Source of the DNA: Phaeosaccion multiseriatum
Taxonomy: Eukaryota > Protista > Ochrophyta, other classes
Direction of reading: 5' to 3'
NCBI GenBank assembly: GCA_965112735.1
Contig: OZ218950.1
Location: forward strand, 4,340,001-4,404,000
DNA length: 64,000 nt
The notes under the pieces are model-generated. The model saw only the letters and a program-made list of their open reading frames with translations. It was not told the DNA's origin and ran no database searches. Of this stretch, positions 1 to 6,200 are shown piece after piece; the stretch's first letter is position 1, and each line of letters starts with the position of its first letter. The translations under genes and the position numbers were made by a program.

Positions 1-1680
1 GGCGGTGGAGGCGAGAGAACCGGGTCAGAACCATAGTGCCATAGCAGCTGGGGCCTACAACGTCACCAGAGAGGAGTGGCTTGTGGCAAGACGGAGTGGA
101 CCGGCCAGAGCTGATGTGTCCAGCTGTTTGCACGGAGTCACTGTAGGTGCTCATGCCGAGCCGGAGCTACTCGAGTGCATTGAGAAGCGGCACGGGTGGA
201 CTGGTGAGGATGAGCTCATACTGGTCATCTCGACCCTCCCCTGCATCGGTTGTGCCCGGCTACTGGCAGAGCGGAAGAGACAAGGACGCCTGAACTGCAG
301 CGTCATCTTCGTAGGCGACTCCCGCCCTGTCCTGGGGGAGGGGAGGAGCATCCTCACGGAGGCTGGCTTTGAGGTAAGCATTGAGCGAAGGGCGCGGCTG
401 GAACAGAGGCATATGGACAGACAGGCAGGCAGAGAGGCAGGCAGGCACGGAGACAGGCAGGCAGAGAGGCAGACACGACGGAGCCGATGCTGATCCCTTT
501 CCCACTCCACCCTTTCCTCCTTCCCCCCCCCCCTCCTTGCTTCACACGTGCAGGTCAAAGAGGACAGCTGGTATTGCTCCGGGCTGCTTCCCCGCATGAG
601 GCGGGTCGAGGTTCTGAAGGGCAAGGAGGTTACTGCCACTTTCGCGGGGGGGAAAGCTCATTGGCGGACGTGGCACAACGCAACTCTTCTTGTCCTGGTG
701 CAGCCCTCGGCGGAGGAGCGCAGGCTTTATGGAGACTTGCTGCGGCGGTGTCTCCTTCTCAAGCTGACTGCGGACCCAAAGCGTAATCAGCGACAGACCA
801 AGAGACCGTTGCAGCTCGAGGCGTACCGCCGGGCTTGCAGGGCTGCCAAGAAGGCCAGCGAGGGAGGGAGGGTGTCGATGATGGCGGTGGGGAGCGATGT
901 GTTGACTCTCTCCGCCGCCATGGACGGGATTTCAGTCGCGAATCTACGCCTTTCCGCCATACAGTCCATGCCCCTCCATCGCGATGGGCAGGAAGTCTCG
1001 GGCTTCAAGCCGGTCATCCTGACATCCACGGGGAAGGAGGGGTTCCGGCTGTTCGGGCAGAGATTCCGGCGGCATATGCCCTTTTCGAGCAGCTGTGTCT
1101 CGGGGTCGAAGGCTGATGCCCTCCCGCCTAATGTTGACACGATGGCAGCGGAAGCTAAGAAGGAAAGGAAGATAAAGAAGCTGGAGAAGCGTGAGCGTGC
1201 CGCTCAGCAGAACCGACGAGTCGCCGAGCAGGTCCGCACCAATATGTTCGGCTTCCTCCCAGTCATGGCGGAAGAAGAGGATGGTGGTAGAGCTGGGGCG
1301 ACTGTCTTGCGCAATGTTCGGCTCGCCCCAGCGCGAATGGCCGCGGACACCAAGAGGAAGGAGGCGGAGGCAGCAAAGAGGAGAGCTGCATTGGCCGAGA
1401 AAAAGCCCAATCAGCGCAGGAAGAAGACTGATGCAAAGGGGGAGGAGAACAAGAGCACGAGCACCACGTCTGTGACCATCGATCCTCGGGGGCGGCCAGA
1501 GGTGTTGAGGGTGCTGAGGGGAGGAGCTGCCAGCCGAGGGGTGGCACAATGTGCTTTTAACGACGCCACGCTGCTGAAGGATTTGGTGGAGTATTTGCCT
1601 CGCTTCCTCCTGGACAAGGGGATGAGTGGACAGCCGGACAATACCATGAAATGGGGTGAGATTGATGCTGAAGGGAGTGT

Positions 1681-1711
<31 letters not shown>

Positions 1712-4700
1712 GAGTCCAAGTGCTGTTGGCGGACGCTTTGCGAGCTCTGGAGGGGCTTGAGTGCTAAACTCGAGCCGTGGTGGGGCGTGGGAAATGAAAT
1801 GTCATTCTCAGCACAGGACTCTGAAGAGCAGGCGAGGGCCGCGTTTGATGGATCCCTACCTCATTGTGTCGATGGTGTCGTCGGGGGCCACCTCAAACTG
1901 CGCTTCCTTTCTGGCCGGGGCTAAGAGACTTGAAGCACTCTTGGGGCTCTGGCGTCATGACGAGTTGGGGGGTCTGCCCCGCCAGTTTAGCCTGGAGTCA
2001 CCACAGACCTACGGGGGCGCGAAGGAGCGATTCAACGCGTGCTTGGGGCTGTTGGTGAAGCTTGGCGCGACGAGTGCCGGTGGTCGAGACAAGCTCAAGC
2101 TTTGGGCGGCGCAGGGGGTGAAGGGCCATGAAGACGAGCAGTTGCCCGGGGCTCTCACAAAGGCGCAGAGACGGGAGTTCGGCAAGGCGAAGAAGGCAAT
2201 GCAGCAGAGGAAGGAGACGGAGCAGAGGGTGGAGGACACCGCGGCGATGCGCGACGGAAACGCACAAGCGACCGCCGAAGTCATTGAGAAGAGGACGCAG
2301 GTGGCGGAGCAGCTCGCGATAAAGGGGGGGGCGGGCTGGACGGCCTCTCTTTCGTGGCATACCGATGAAGGCCTTGACACGCAGCTGAGGAGCCTCATGG
2401 CGCCGCTCCTGTTACAGGAGAGGTATCGAGGGCATGAGGAGGCGGCGTTGGAGGAGGCCAAGTTGCTGCTCCAGTCTGCGAAGGAAGAAGAGATTCCCTG
2501 GGTGACTGCCTACGGCACCGGAAAGGTGGAGACAGAGGAACCGCCACCCCCTATCCGCGAGACGACTCATATAGCTTTTGCGGCCAATCTTTACTCCTTC
2601 ATCACGCAAGGGAGACGAGGACGCTGCGTGCTGGTGAGTGGCTGGGGCAGAGGAAGGAAGAGGGAGAGAGGAGGAGGGGAGGATGGAGGGAGCGGGGCCT
2701 GTCTCGCCCTTGTATAGCTAGCACCAGGGACAGATGAGGCTCCAAATGTCGACGATGGTCCGAATTCCAACATGTGTGCCACGCTCTTTTTGTACCTGCT
2801 GCATCTGACGCTGCCAACTCACACGCCTTTGCCTGCCCCTCTTCTCAGATGCAAAATGGCTTTCTCAATGAGTTGGCCCTGTACATGTCGAGAGCCGAGT
2901 TTGTGCCCTCCCTCACGTACAAATACGCCGGCCCCAAGAAAGGACCTACCACCCCACAGCAATTCCGAGGACGGCAGGCCGGGCAGCAGCTCCCCAGCCC
3001 TTTGACTCTTCTCCGGGATGTCACGGCACAGGTGAAGAAGCGGAGCACCGTGCGACGACGACCCCTCGCGGAAGAGATTGCCATTCTCGCTGTGGAGGCT
3101 CACAAGGCAGTCCACGGCCCGGAGGGCCAAGATAACTACCGTGAGACCTACCAGCAAATGGCGGCCTCTGGGGCCCTAACATACGCCCAATCAGCGGAGT
3201 ATGAGACAGACGATCAGCGGAAGCTTGTGCTGGACGCTGCAACAACTGCTGGTTTTATGGCAGCGAGAGGAGGGGAGGAAGCAAAGCAGGTGCTGGAAAC
3301 TGCGCGCGGGCTCGTGAAGCGGTGCGTCGATCTGGGGAGGGGGGTCGGGAGGGGAGCCACTGAGGAAGAGCCGGGGCCTCCAGAGCATTCTGTTGAGCAG
3401 AAGGCTCAGGAGCAGCAGGAGAGAGTTCAGAGCGCATACTCCACTCTTGCCAGGCAGGACAGTTGGCAGGGGCTTACGAGCGGCCCGGTGTTTGAGGCCC
3501 GCCTTGCCGCTCTTGTCGTCACACAACATGTCGGAGAGACTACACTCGCCAACACAGAGACTACACTCAGCTACGTGTATGGCGGCGACAAGTGCAGGGC
3601 AAAGGCTGCGGCGGAGATCCTTACCATGGCTCTACAGCATGCCGAGCTTGGCACTGAGCAAGCGTCTGTGGACACAATCAAAGAGCGTTGTCTCCAGCCT
3701 CCGTCGAGGCGCTTTCTCCGCAAATCCGTTGACCGACAGGTGGACGCGATGCAGACACACGTTGGGGTTGGGCGATTCCGTGGGGAGCGCGGCGCAGCGG
3801 AGCGTGGGGAGAGGCAGGTGCAGAGCACCGAGTACTTTAGGGCAGGGCGTTGTGGGGACCTCAATCCGGGCGAGTTTGGGCTGCAGTACCGGAAAGATGG
3901 GGTGGGAGGGGGTGAAGCCCTCGTCGAGAAGGAAGCGAGATGGATCGAGAGGGTGACCGTGTGCGTCACGGAGGGGCACACTCTGACCCTGTTCGACCAG
4001 ACAGGGAAGCCCAGGCGGCGCCTGTGGCGGGAGCCAGCCCACCCGGCGGATGGGGGGACGTCGGTGACGCCAAGGTGGCTTTGCGTGACGGGCCCCGTGC
4101 TTGGCGACTGCGCCCATGGTACATCGCTCCATCTCCAGTTTGAGGATGACCGACCAGCTGTTCCGCAGATGGAAGTGCATGGGGGGGAGAGGGGGGAGGA
4201 GAAGGAGTTGGAAGACTACCGCAACCTCCGCCGTGAGATTCTTGGCGAAGCGGGTCCTCCTCGGGTGGAGGGGAGGGGTGAGGGAGAGAGGGAGGGAGAG
4301 AGGGAGGGAGAGACGCAGACGGGGAGGGATAGAGGAAGGGAGGAAGGGAGGGAGGGAGGGAGAGAGGGAGGGAGAGAGAGATGGAGGGGGGGAGAGAGGG
4401 AGAGGGAGAGGGAGAGATGGAGGGAGGGAGAGAGGGAGAGAGAGAGGGAGGGAGAGAGGGAGCGGATGGATGAGTTGGTGAAATTGCGTCTTCAAGCCAC
4501 GGAACTTCGTCGGGAGCTGCAGGCACTCACAGGGGTAAGTACTCTTAGGAGTAGAAGTAGTAGTAGTAGTAGTAGTAGTAATAGTAGCAGCAACAGTAGT
4601 AGTAGTGGTAATAGTTATAGTAGTAGTCAGCAGCAGTAGCAGTAGTAGCTACCTTGTCATCTCAAAGAACTCCTTTGGCTTGTGGCTTGTTTCCCTCTTC

Positions 4701-5911
4701 GCCGACATCAGGTCAAGGAATGGCGGAGCCGCCGCAAGAAGAAGAAGAAGCTGTCGAACGTGGACGCCAAGATCAGGAAGCTGGACCGAGCCATGGCAGG
4801 AGAGCATGGCCAGGACAGAAAGTGGCGCGGTCTCCGTGTGGAGGACCTTCCTCCGCGCTCTGGCCTCCACGCCAACACCAAGTATGTGGAAGTGCTTGAT
4901 CCATTCGAGGGGCACCAGGAGCCAGGGTTTGGCGACAAGGTCCGGCAGTATCTTGGAAAGCTAACCCCCGAGCAAAGATGGGGAGGGGCCGACCCCGGAG
5001 TGCGGACGTTCCTGTCCATCTGGTGTGCCCACACTGGGCGCTTCTTCAGGGTGGGTCACGGCTTCTCCGCCTCCATGCGGCCGCTGCAGAGGAGGATAGC
5101 GAAGCTGGAGAGCCAGGTGTGGCAGGCAGCGCAGGTGAGGAGGATGCGTGCCTCGCCCAAGTCTCTTGTCGTGGCTGATGTCACTTTCTAATCCCTCCCT
5201 CCCTCCCTCCGCCCGCGCACAGAGTGGACAGGACACGCGGGCTCTTCGCCTGGAGGCGGCCAAGATGCGGGCGCTCTTGCACCACAAGACGCTCGTCCTC
5301 CACACGATAGCCATACGGCTCATCGTGGCCAACTTCACGCACTTTGTGTTGCCTCCTGTCCGGGCCCAGGCATGGTCCAGCCGGCGGGGCCGCCAGATCT
5401 CGGGGCTGCCGAGGGATATGGGGAGGGACATGGACGCCCTCTCCATGGGTCTATTCCGCCAACGGCTCAAGACGGTGCGTGTGTGCGTCTGTTGCTTGTT
5501 GTTGGCTTGGTGTTGGGCTGGCTGGCCTGGCTGGTGTCGCTCAGACTGAGACACCTCCGTCCCCATCAGCAACCCTCGTGTGGCTGAGCTAACAATTCCT
5601 CTCGTTGACTTCCTTCTTTGGCTGCCCGAACTCCTCTCGCTCAGGCCATCGCCTCTCCCTCCTGCTCACTAGTGCTGCGTGAGCCCAGCGAGGCCTTCAC
5701 CACCAAGACATGCACCGCCTGTGGTGCATTCAATGAGTGCGTGGGGGCCAAGAAGGTGTGGACTTGCCCCACCTGCAAGGCCACGCTCTTACGGGACCCT
5801 TGTGCGGCCCGAACAATCACTCTGTTCGGGCTGTACGACTTCTCAAAGGCATGGCCAACTCCAAGGCCACGCCACCCACAACATCTTCCCAGTAAGTGGC
5901 TGGCTGGCTGA
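1..5911 (+). CDS. Giant spliced Fanzor (TnpB-family RNA-guided nuclease) with N-terminal Zn-dependent deaminase domain; 5'-partial; one apparent +1 frameshift near 1908
   Basis: Reconstructed exons <1-373, 554-2633 (frameshift ~1905-1912), 2849-4534, 4712-5134, 5223-5474, 5645-5911. All five introns are GT..AG and phase 0. Deaminase motifs HAE and PCIGC lie in exon 1. RuvC-I ADPGVRTF, LSMGLFRQRL, SEAFTTKTCTACG, WTCPTC and RDPCAARTI lie in the last three exons. A further possible intron 5892-5962 would extend the ORF to 6168. Confidence 0.65.
2..373 (+). CDS. Cytidine/deoxycytidylate deaminase-superfamily domain (exon)
   Basis: AIAAGAYN (like the dCMP-deaminase/TadA 'G.N' strand), HAE at 152-160, LVISTLPCIGCARLL with PCxxC at 239-253, then a hydrophobic strand VIFVG. 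Donor GAG|GTAAGC at 374. Confidence 0.8.
4712..5911 (+). CDS. Fanzor2/IS607-TnpB-like RuvC and zinc-ribbon module (3 exons)
   Basis: RuvC-I Asp at 4991 (GGADPGVRTFLSIW); bridge-helix-like LQRRIAKLESQ; Pro at the canonical RuvC-II position (FVLPPV, ~5352); alternative Glu at 5690 (SEAFTTKTC); CTAC at 5711-5722; CPTC at 5765-5776; RuvC-III Asp at 5795 (RDPCAARTI). Confidence 0.9.
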
Positions 5912-6059
5912 TTGCGTCCCTGCCTGCCTGCCTGCCTGCCTCTCGCTAATCTGCCTGTCCAGCCAGGAGGGCAGCCAGCCCTTGTTGCTTACTTGCTTGC
6001 TGCCTGAACAAGAAACACCTCCTGAGTTTCCCTGCCTTGCTTACTTGTCCTCACTCATC

Positions 6060-6200
6060 ATCATGTGCTCGGGCGGGCAACGAATCAACAACAGCTGGGG
6101 CTTTCGAGCCGGGGAAGCAGTCGGCTGCCTCCGGGCAGCCAGCGACTGTACAACACATGGTGTTGTAGGTGAGTCATAGCTTAATGCGTTGCTTGCTGCT
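6060..6200 (+). ncRNA. Candidate Fanzor omegaRNA scaffold (boundaries uncertain)
   Basis: Directly 3' of the RuvC gene. Stem CAGTC-GGCTGCC/TCCG/GGCAGCC-agc-GACTG at 6118-6148 is immediately followed by stem TACAACAC/ATG/GTGTTGTA at 6149-6167. GCTCG and CGAGC at ~6067-6109 could also pair. Confidence 0.4.

Follow-up and report, generated by a model that had tools for sequence, protein, structure and literature searches.

Among described nucleases, those with which the gene reported here invites comparison are the Fanzor proteins and the TnpBs of IS607 elements. ApmFz2, the Fanzor2 encoded by mimivirus L79 (PDB 9b0l), is a compact, intron-less protein of 520 residues with N-terminal (NTD), REC and WED domains, has an omega-RNA of 247 nucleotides (nt), and lies beside TnpA in an IS607 element (PMC11832414, PMC10530073). 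The pro-Fanzor IS607 TnpBs (Yoon et al. 2023) are prokaryotic and intron-less proteins of ~350-480 residues with a well-conserved N-terminal half. Fanzor1 proteins, such as SpuFz1 and the intron-containing Fanzor1c of Chlamydomonas, combine a eukaryotic setting with acquired introns and long N-terminal additions (PMC10530073, PMC10711439). Intron acquisition, nuclear localisation signals (NLSs), extra domains and a rearranged active site have already been described for Fanzors, and eukaryotic Fanzor2 genes are also reported in association with other transposons (PMC10530073). Here we analyse a 64-kb stretch of the genome of Phaeosaccion multiseriatum (GCA_965112735.1, contig OZ218950.1, 4,340,001-4,404,000 of the forward strand), hereafter the window, whose own coordinates are used throughout. 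Analysis of open reading frames (ORFs), splice sites and profiles places at positions 4712-5911 what are probably the three final coding exons of a longer gene interrupted by introns. They most likely encode a nuclease domain, catalytically competent by its looks, within a large protein that is lineage-specific and derives from an IS607/Fanzor2-type gene; the target-recognition part of this protein is either new or diverged beyond recognition.

The three exons, numbered 2 to 4 (4712-5134, 5223-5474 and 5645-5908, Table 1), are drawn from ORFs 4682-5191 (frame 2), 5148-5549 (frame 0) and 5618-5911 (frame 2), and when joined at predicted canonical phase-0 GT-AG sites they yield a peptide of 313 residues, with neither stops nor frameshifts in any of its codons. 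Both introns within this module (88 and 170 nt) show GT-AG ends and contain in-frame stops, and they are taken as real because the three exon ORFs match consecutive segments of the family profile and their removal restores the spacing almost without gaps, the alignment over the joint 5134/5223 displaying a single gap of one residue. On the 5' side, frame 2 remains open from 2774 to 5188 except for stops within the predicted 177-nt intron at 4535-4711, which holds three of them in frame together with an (AGT)n microsatellite at 4545-4645. The 587-codon ORF ahead of this intron (2774-4534) stands where the WED/REC half of a Fanzor would be, in frame with exon 2. The stretch 4712-5911, read by the original prediction as an intron-containing Fanzor2-type nuclease, is thus not a whole gene but the C-terminal Fanzor half, continuing in frame from that upstream ORF. 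The link between the module exons and the upstream ORF, as well as all the junctions, is predicted from sequence.

Regarding domain searches, exon 4 alone passes the Pfam threshold of PF07282 (Cas12f1-like TNB / OrfB zinc ribbon; 32.8 bits versus a cut-off of 26.3) and finds IS607_TnpB as its best NCBIfam match. Exons 2 and 3 alone match nothing in Pfam, and ORF-based searches would therefore miss the gene, in line with the earlier proposal that two spliceosomal introns split the module and hide it. Exon 4, searched exhaustively with HMMER against 1.84 billion cluster representatives, returned 309 relatives, none above ~47 bits. Of those with full length, nearly all show the signature of DPG plus alternative Glu; the top match (P0001) proved to be an unrelated repeat protein and was discarded. 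A family hidden Markov model (HMM) built from 61 full-length relatives, the window sequence being excluded, aligns to the spliced protein as one co-linear domain over positions 261-460 (162.7 bits, E 7.7e-52), a value that rules out a chance motif match. Hence, the TnpB/Fanzor profile search with the spliced peptide that had been proposed as a check returned a clear match. By BLASTP, a TnpB relative from a giant-virus IS607-like locus (L002) shares 26% identity over 225 residues extending across all three exons. Metagenome contigs yielded relatives at 40-47% identity only, a scan of viral contigs with exon 2 yielded nothing, and within the window neither the gene nor its 3' flank was found a second time. 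A word-index search with the upstream ORF and the exon 2 ORF gave no match in a collection from which the proteins of this genome are absent, since not even the proteins of the window itself were recovered there.

The motifs expected from the original prediction were all found where it had placed them. ADPGVRTF (RuvC-I, DPGVRTF from 4991) provides in exon 2 an Asp at 4991-4993, its D, P and G being invariant in all 61 relatives. The canonical RuvC-II site in exon 3 reads FVLPPV (VLPP from 5346), with Pro at 5352-5354 and no Glu, a replacement shared by 46 of the 61 relatives, and the same exon holds LSMGLFRQRL. In exon 4, EAFTTKTCTACG starts at 5690 and SEAFTTKTCTACG carries the alternative Glu at 5690-5692, six residues ahead of the first CxxC. 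The four Cys of the zinc ribbon are all kept (5711, 5720, 5765 and 5774, with CPTC at 5765), and the RuvC-III Arg-Asp occupies 5792-5797, the Asp of RDPCAARTI lying at 5795-5797 and its Thr at 5813. Local scripts confirmed that the spliced peptide fits the expression DPG-x(120,160)-E-x6-CxxC-x(12,18)-CxxC-x(4,8)-D, with spacings of 144, 14 and 6, and that without removal of both introns the distance from DPG to Glu would lie outside the 120-160 range. This expression was used by Yoon et al. to select TnpB/Fanzor proteins with a rearranged active site (PMC10711439).

Comparison with ApmFz2 places the same residues in the active site. Alignment of exon 4 with PDB 9b0l sets the window Glu on Glu467 and the window Asp on Asp501, and the DPG Asp (4991) corresponds to Asp324 when the nearest-relative profile is compared with 9b0l. 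Asp324, Glu467 and Asp501 are the reported catalytic triad of ApmFz2 (PMC11832414), so that the triad aligns residue for residue and its retention, claimed earlier along with that of the four Cys, is substantiated. The likeness extends to the DPG motif, the non-acidic residue at the canonical RuvC-II position, E-x6-CxxC, CxxC...CxxC and the RuvC-III RD. Unlike ApmFz2, the window gene is recognisable only in its RuvC-ZnF half, has two introns and at least 587 orphan codons ahead of the module, and shows Thr for the second RuvC-III Asn; nor does the window contain a serine recombinase. As to the first RuvC-III Asn, this column contains N in 33, C in 13, G in 8 and H in 5 of the 61 relatives, and the Cys found here is a normal variant instead of the potentially weakening loss that had been suspected.

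Considering that DPG and the alternative Glu are common to Fanzor1, Fanzor2 and pro-Fanzor TnpB (PMC10711439), the motifs alone, on which the original prediction had relied to name a Fanzor2, cannot specify that class within the clade. The Fanzor2/IS607-type assignment is nonetheless supported by similarity, though not by a labelled tree. When the nearest-relative profile (30 rows, three of them pieces of the window) was compared with solved structures, mimivirus L79 Fanzor2 (9b0l) was the best match, at 253 bits versus 105 bits for ISDra2 TnpB, and no chain named Fanzor1 appeared among the matches even at E<=10. The best-scoring relative (P0112) directly follows a Resolvase gene on a contig of 61% GC, two others (P0103 and P0163) are found on giant-virus-like contigs, and at three giant-virus loci (L001-L003) a serine recombinase is followed by a TnpB-like gene. 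These three, from giant-virus metagenome contigs, appear as IS607-like units (2257-4156 in L001, 2260-4156 in L002 and L003), in which a 630-residue ORF contains in its initial part, in another frame, a 207-residue MerR-HTH/serine-recombinase ORF; the C-terminal ~420 residues of the longer ORF are TnpB/Fanzor2. In a FastTree analysis of RuvC cores, which included no labelled Fanzor1, the window groups weakly (support 0.79) on a long branch. The gene resembles the pro-Fanzor IS607 TnpBs in fitting their defining expression and in its best NCBIfam match. Unlike them, it is nuclear, sits among host genes, has spliceosomal-type introns and lacks a detectable N-terminal half. It shares with Fanzor1 the eukaryotic setting, acquired introns, long N-terminal addition and DPG/alternative-Glu active site (PMC10530073, PMC10711439), and differs from it in that the module, by sequence similarity, is much nearer to Fanzor2 and IS607 TnpB. 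No serine recombinase was detected in the window by tblastn with two resolvases of related loci (best E 0.14), and the element may extend past the window start, beyond the reach of this search.

Of the 24 columns at least 90% conserved in the 61 relatives, 21 are kept in the window, the exceptions being T102S, L175I and N282T, and among columns less than 50% conserved it matches the consensus in 15 of 100. Because retention tracks conservation in this way, and because the 313 codons are free of stops and the splice sites are clean, purifying selection probably acted over most of the long branch. We infer a Mg-dependent DNA nuclease domain that still works, or did so until recently. The suggestion that the nuclease may be active therefore stands for the catalytic half, which is intact and could form an active nuclease; it does not carry over to RNA-guided activity, which is unproven, the WED/REC part not being detectable. 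GC at third codon positions (GC3) is 0.68-0.83 in the module exons, similar to that of the host genes of the window, and the introns show no codon periodicity. The locus of one viral relative has 20% GC, and the host genome 58%. A long residence in the nuclear genome, as earlier put forward, fits these values.

On the contrary, the half of the protein that would bind the guide could not be recognised. Profile positions 1-260, which cover WED/REC, match nothing in the window, whichever frame is read, and homology becomes detectable at KYVEVLDP, ~4880 or exon 2 residue 57, according to hhalign with exon 2 itself as a profile row. With half-profile HMMs, the C-half of the window protein scores 143 bits versus -2.1 bits for its N-half. 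None of the 61 relatives falls below 38.6 bits on the N-half, and those with a weak C-half (153-171 bits) still attain 39-110 bits on it, values somewhat inflated by their being members of the training set. Applied to the upstream protein, the N-half HMM performs no better than on shuffles, and hhalign of 2774-4534 against the family profile returns a probability of 0.4%; a relaxed run reaches 48%, solely via the DPG segment. The upstream ORF has no match in Pfam, NCBIfam or the protein collection, and the single-sequence AlphaFold model of 2774-4270 is unusable, with a predicted local distance difference test (pLDDT) value of 38. PH-like leads for this ORF from an Atlas feature search (<=0.83) fell within the noise range and were rejected. 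Within its open frame, ~4270-4460 is taken up by a low-complexity tract of Gly, Glu and Arg (GGGAGAGA-type repeat).

A similar profile is displayed by a Cyanophora paradoxa model, tig00000912_g5430.t1 (EukProt EP00741; P0119), a protein of 1,449 residues whose C-half scores 165 bits and whose N-half scores -0.2 bits, as in the window. It likewise ends in a Fanzor2-type RuvC-ZnF, which a long insertion interrupts (profile positions 259-327 match at residues 1056-1123, and 310-456 at 1279-1429), the window module being free of such an insertion. The upstream parts of the two genes are not significantly similar, and the Cyanophora model may be a gene-model fusion.

At the 3' end, a hairpin of 16 pairs (Table 1) coincides with the codons for CAARTITLFGLY, the unusual RuvC-III segment, and an RNA or DNA structure over these codons might help to explain the odd residues there. 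Roughly estimated, a repeat of this kind would turn up by chance in 1.2 kb in a few percent of cases. The fold of 5800-6200 is better than that of shuffles (z = -4.35), its energy being inflated by complementary CTGC/GCAG microsatellites, and no Rfam family matches the 3' region. The hairpin is at this point a lead only. A perfect donor-like site, CA/GTAAGT, occurs at 5891/5892, 18 nt 5' of the stop codon, and the protein may therefore not stop at 5911 but be spliced there to an additional 3' exon. The RSRRKKKKK cluster at 4724-4750, in the start of exon 2, resembles a monopartite NLS; it is internal, not N-terminal, if the upstream ORF belongs to the protein.

Three other explanations of these features have to be weighed. 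The locus could encode a complete RNA-guided Fanzor2, with a diverged WED/REC encoded by 2774-4534 plus exon 2 up to its 56th codon, and an omega-RNA arising from the 3' end and its flank. The intact catalytic half speaks for it, as do the NLS-like cluster, Fanzors being known to have gained NLSs (PMC10530073), and the 3' fold together with the hairpin over RuvC-III codons, as in TnpB/Fanzor2 the omega-RNA and the gene overlap at the 3' end of the latter (PMC10530073, PMC11832414). In addition, the order of elements in the low-confidence model, a helical region followed by ~seven strands and a helix, would be compatible with REC then WED, and the relaxed hhalign run recovers, at near-zero confidence, the proper order of FRxKK-like and yyLxxP-like motifs. 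Against these points stand the N-half score within the range of shuffles, the negligible hhalign probability of the standard run, the unusable structure model, the microsatellites that inflate the fold energy, and the fact that every relative with a similarly weak C-half keeps its N-half signal. Altogether, a complete Fanzor2 appears rather unlikely, without being far-fetched. A stand-alone RuvC-ZnF protein of 286 residues, starting at the exon 2 ATG at 4793 and transcribed from within 4535-4711, would account for the missing half in another way, this ATG being the first in frame in exon 2 and lying ahead of all detectable homology. The frame, however, is continuous with the 587-codon ORF across a strong intron (GTAAGT...CAG) that is divisible in length by three. 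Moreover, to our knowledge no described TnpB or Fanzor is functional without its N-terminal half, and this explanation is therefore highly improbable. The account of ApmFz2 (PMC11832414) also bears on this point.

Finally, the exons could be the intact-looking end of a copy in decay, left over from an element with a Fanzor2 and no longer giving a working protein. The long terminal branch, the Thr at a near-invariant Asn, the many altered second-tier positions, the frame change upstream at 1761-1924 and the lack of a close relative in the 1.84 billion cluster representatives would agree with decay. Such a relic would hardly be expected to preserve 313 stop-free codons, for which our own estimate gives a chance of ~1e-5 in random sequence of the same composition, nor canonical splice sites in four pairs, each of phase 0, a clear codon-position periodicity of GC, and 21 of the 24 top-conserved positions with all catalytic residues and zinc ligands among them. 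Decay is thus considered unlikely. Several observations nevertheless weigh against an exon set that ends a functional lineage-specific protein, and they should be kept in view: (i) the terminal branch measures 1.57 versus a median of 0.60 (2.6x), and only 6 of 17 columns conserved at 70-90% are kept, either of which could mean relaxed constraint; (ii) the second RuvC-III Asn is N in 58 of the 61 relatives and the Thr is unique to the window, so that of the two Asn replacements originally pointed out this one is indeed unusual; (iii) non-detection of WED/REC at the sequence level does not prove its absence, and the N-terminal parts of Fanzor1 are also very divergent (PMC10711439); (iv) the plus-strand ORFs 548-1924 (frame 2) and 1761-2717 (frame 0) overlap by 164 nt at 1761-1924; and (v) of the words sampled, only 9-12% occur in two metatranscriptome runs, at most a hint of expression.

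If the exons are indeed the nuclease end of a large lineage-specific protein, the module would form the C-terminus of a polypeptide of at least 900 residues, or of ~1,900 if the deaminase-like exon described below is included. The upstream part would then replace the guide-RNA-binding WED/REC half, or conceal it beyond recognition. DNA would be cut by Asp4991, Glu5690 and Asp5795, as in ApmFz2, and the choice of target would depend on an omega-RNA or on something else.

Further upstream, the window opens with a deaminase-like exon whose Pfam matches are all below threshold (SNAD4 17.9 bits, dCMP_cyt_deam_1 15.7 bits, and APOBEC2) and which putatively belongs with the nuclease exons. Between them, the overlap at 1761-1924 may be linked by an intron holding (CAG)n, e.g., 1679-1811, or by a frameshift, and enumeration of GT-AG pairs for this joint gave too many candidates to choose from. 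An apparent intron, including 2656-2691, separates ORF 1761-2717, whose library search covered positions up to 2654, from ORF 2774-4639. Microsatellites are frequent in introns here, as seen for (AGT)n in 4535-4711 and (GGCA)n in 374-553, and a (CTGC)n tract follows 5911. The remaining window consists of ordinary host genes (TauE, enoyl-CoA hydratase/3HCDH, RSN1_7TM, AAA and Sel1). Natural deaminase-Fanzor fusions were not found among the literature matches listed, which comprised engineered editors only.

Table 1. Features of the Fanzor2-type nuclease gene and its upstream region in window coordinates; a slash marks a predicted exon-intron border.
Feature	Position	Strand	Details
Deaminase-like exon, HAEPE...PCIGC (HAE...PCxxC)	5-373	+	Pfam matches below cut-off
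Predicted intron, 180 nt, (GGCA)n	374-553	+	GAG/GTAAGC...GTGCAG/G; joins 5-373 in frame to 554 onward
Upstream orphan ORF, same frame as exon 2	2774-4534	+	587 codons; the exon itself may start elsewhere
Predicted intron, 177 nt, phase 0	4535-4711	+	GGG/GTAAGT...ATCAG/G; GC 0.42, no codon periodicity
Exon 2: NLS-like cluster, last WED-like strand (KYVEVLDP), RuvC-I	4712-5134	+	Profile segment 261-310, 28 bits, E 9e-8
Predicted intron, 88 nt, phase 0	5135-5222	+	CAG/GTGAGG...CACAG/A
Exon 3: RuvC helices, conserved His (LVLHTIA), FVLPPV, LSMGLFRQRL	5223-5474	+	Profile segment 311-391, 31.7 bits, E 7e-9
Predicted intron, 170 nt, phase 0	5475-5644	+	ACG/GTGCGT...CTCAG/G
Exon 4: alternative Glu, zinc ribbon, RuvC-III, stop 5909-5911	5645-5911	+	Profile segment 400-461, 86.8 bits
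Hairpin of 16 pairs, 13 Watson-Crick and 3 G-U, 7-nt loop	5800-5838	+	Within RuvC-III codons

Intron-bearing algal Fanzors are already known, and the module itself is a further member of a known family. What both the window and the Cyanophora model present is a catalytically complete, apparently selected TnpB-type core that ends a much longer protein without a recognisable guide-binding half. In its most far-reaching form, which we regard as doubtful, the locus would represent a Fanzor2 RuvC-zinc-ribbon that was added, in the form of three terminal exons, to a lineage-specific protein of very large size with a zinc deaminase-like start and no ordinary WED/REC, that is, a natural deaminase-nuclease fusion on a multi-copy element, with either a new RNA/DNA-recognition module or a guide-free TnpB core. 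If the architecture is real and expressed, it would bear on how far eukaryotes redeploy the TnpB core and, lying downstream of a deaminase-like exon, on the existence of natural deaminase-nuclease fusions. The locus also illustrates how a viral/IS607-type gene has adapted to a nuclear genome of 58% GC, with introns and host-like codon usage.

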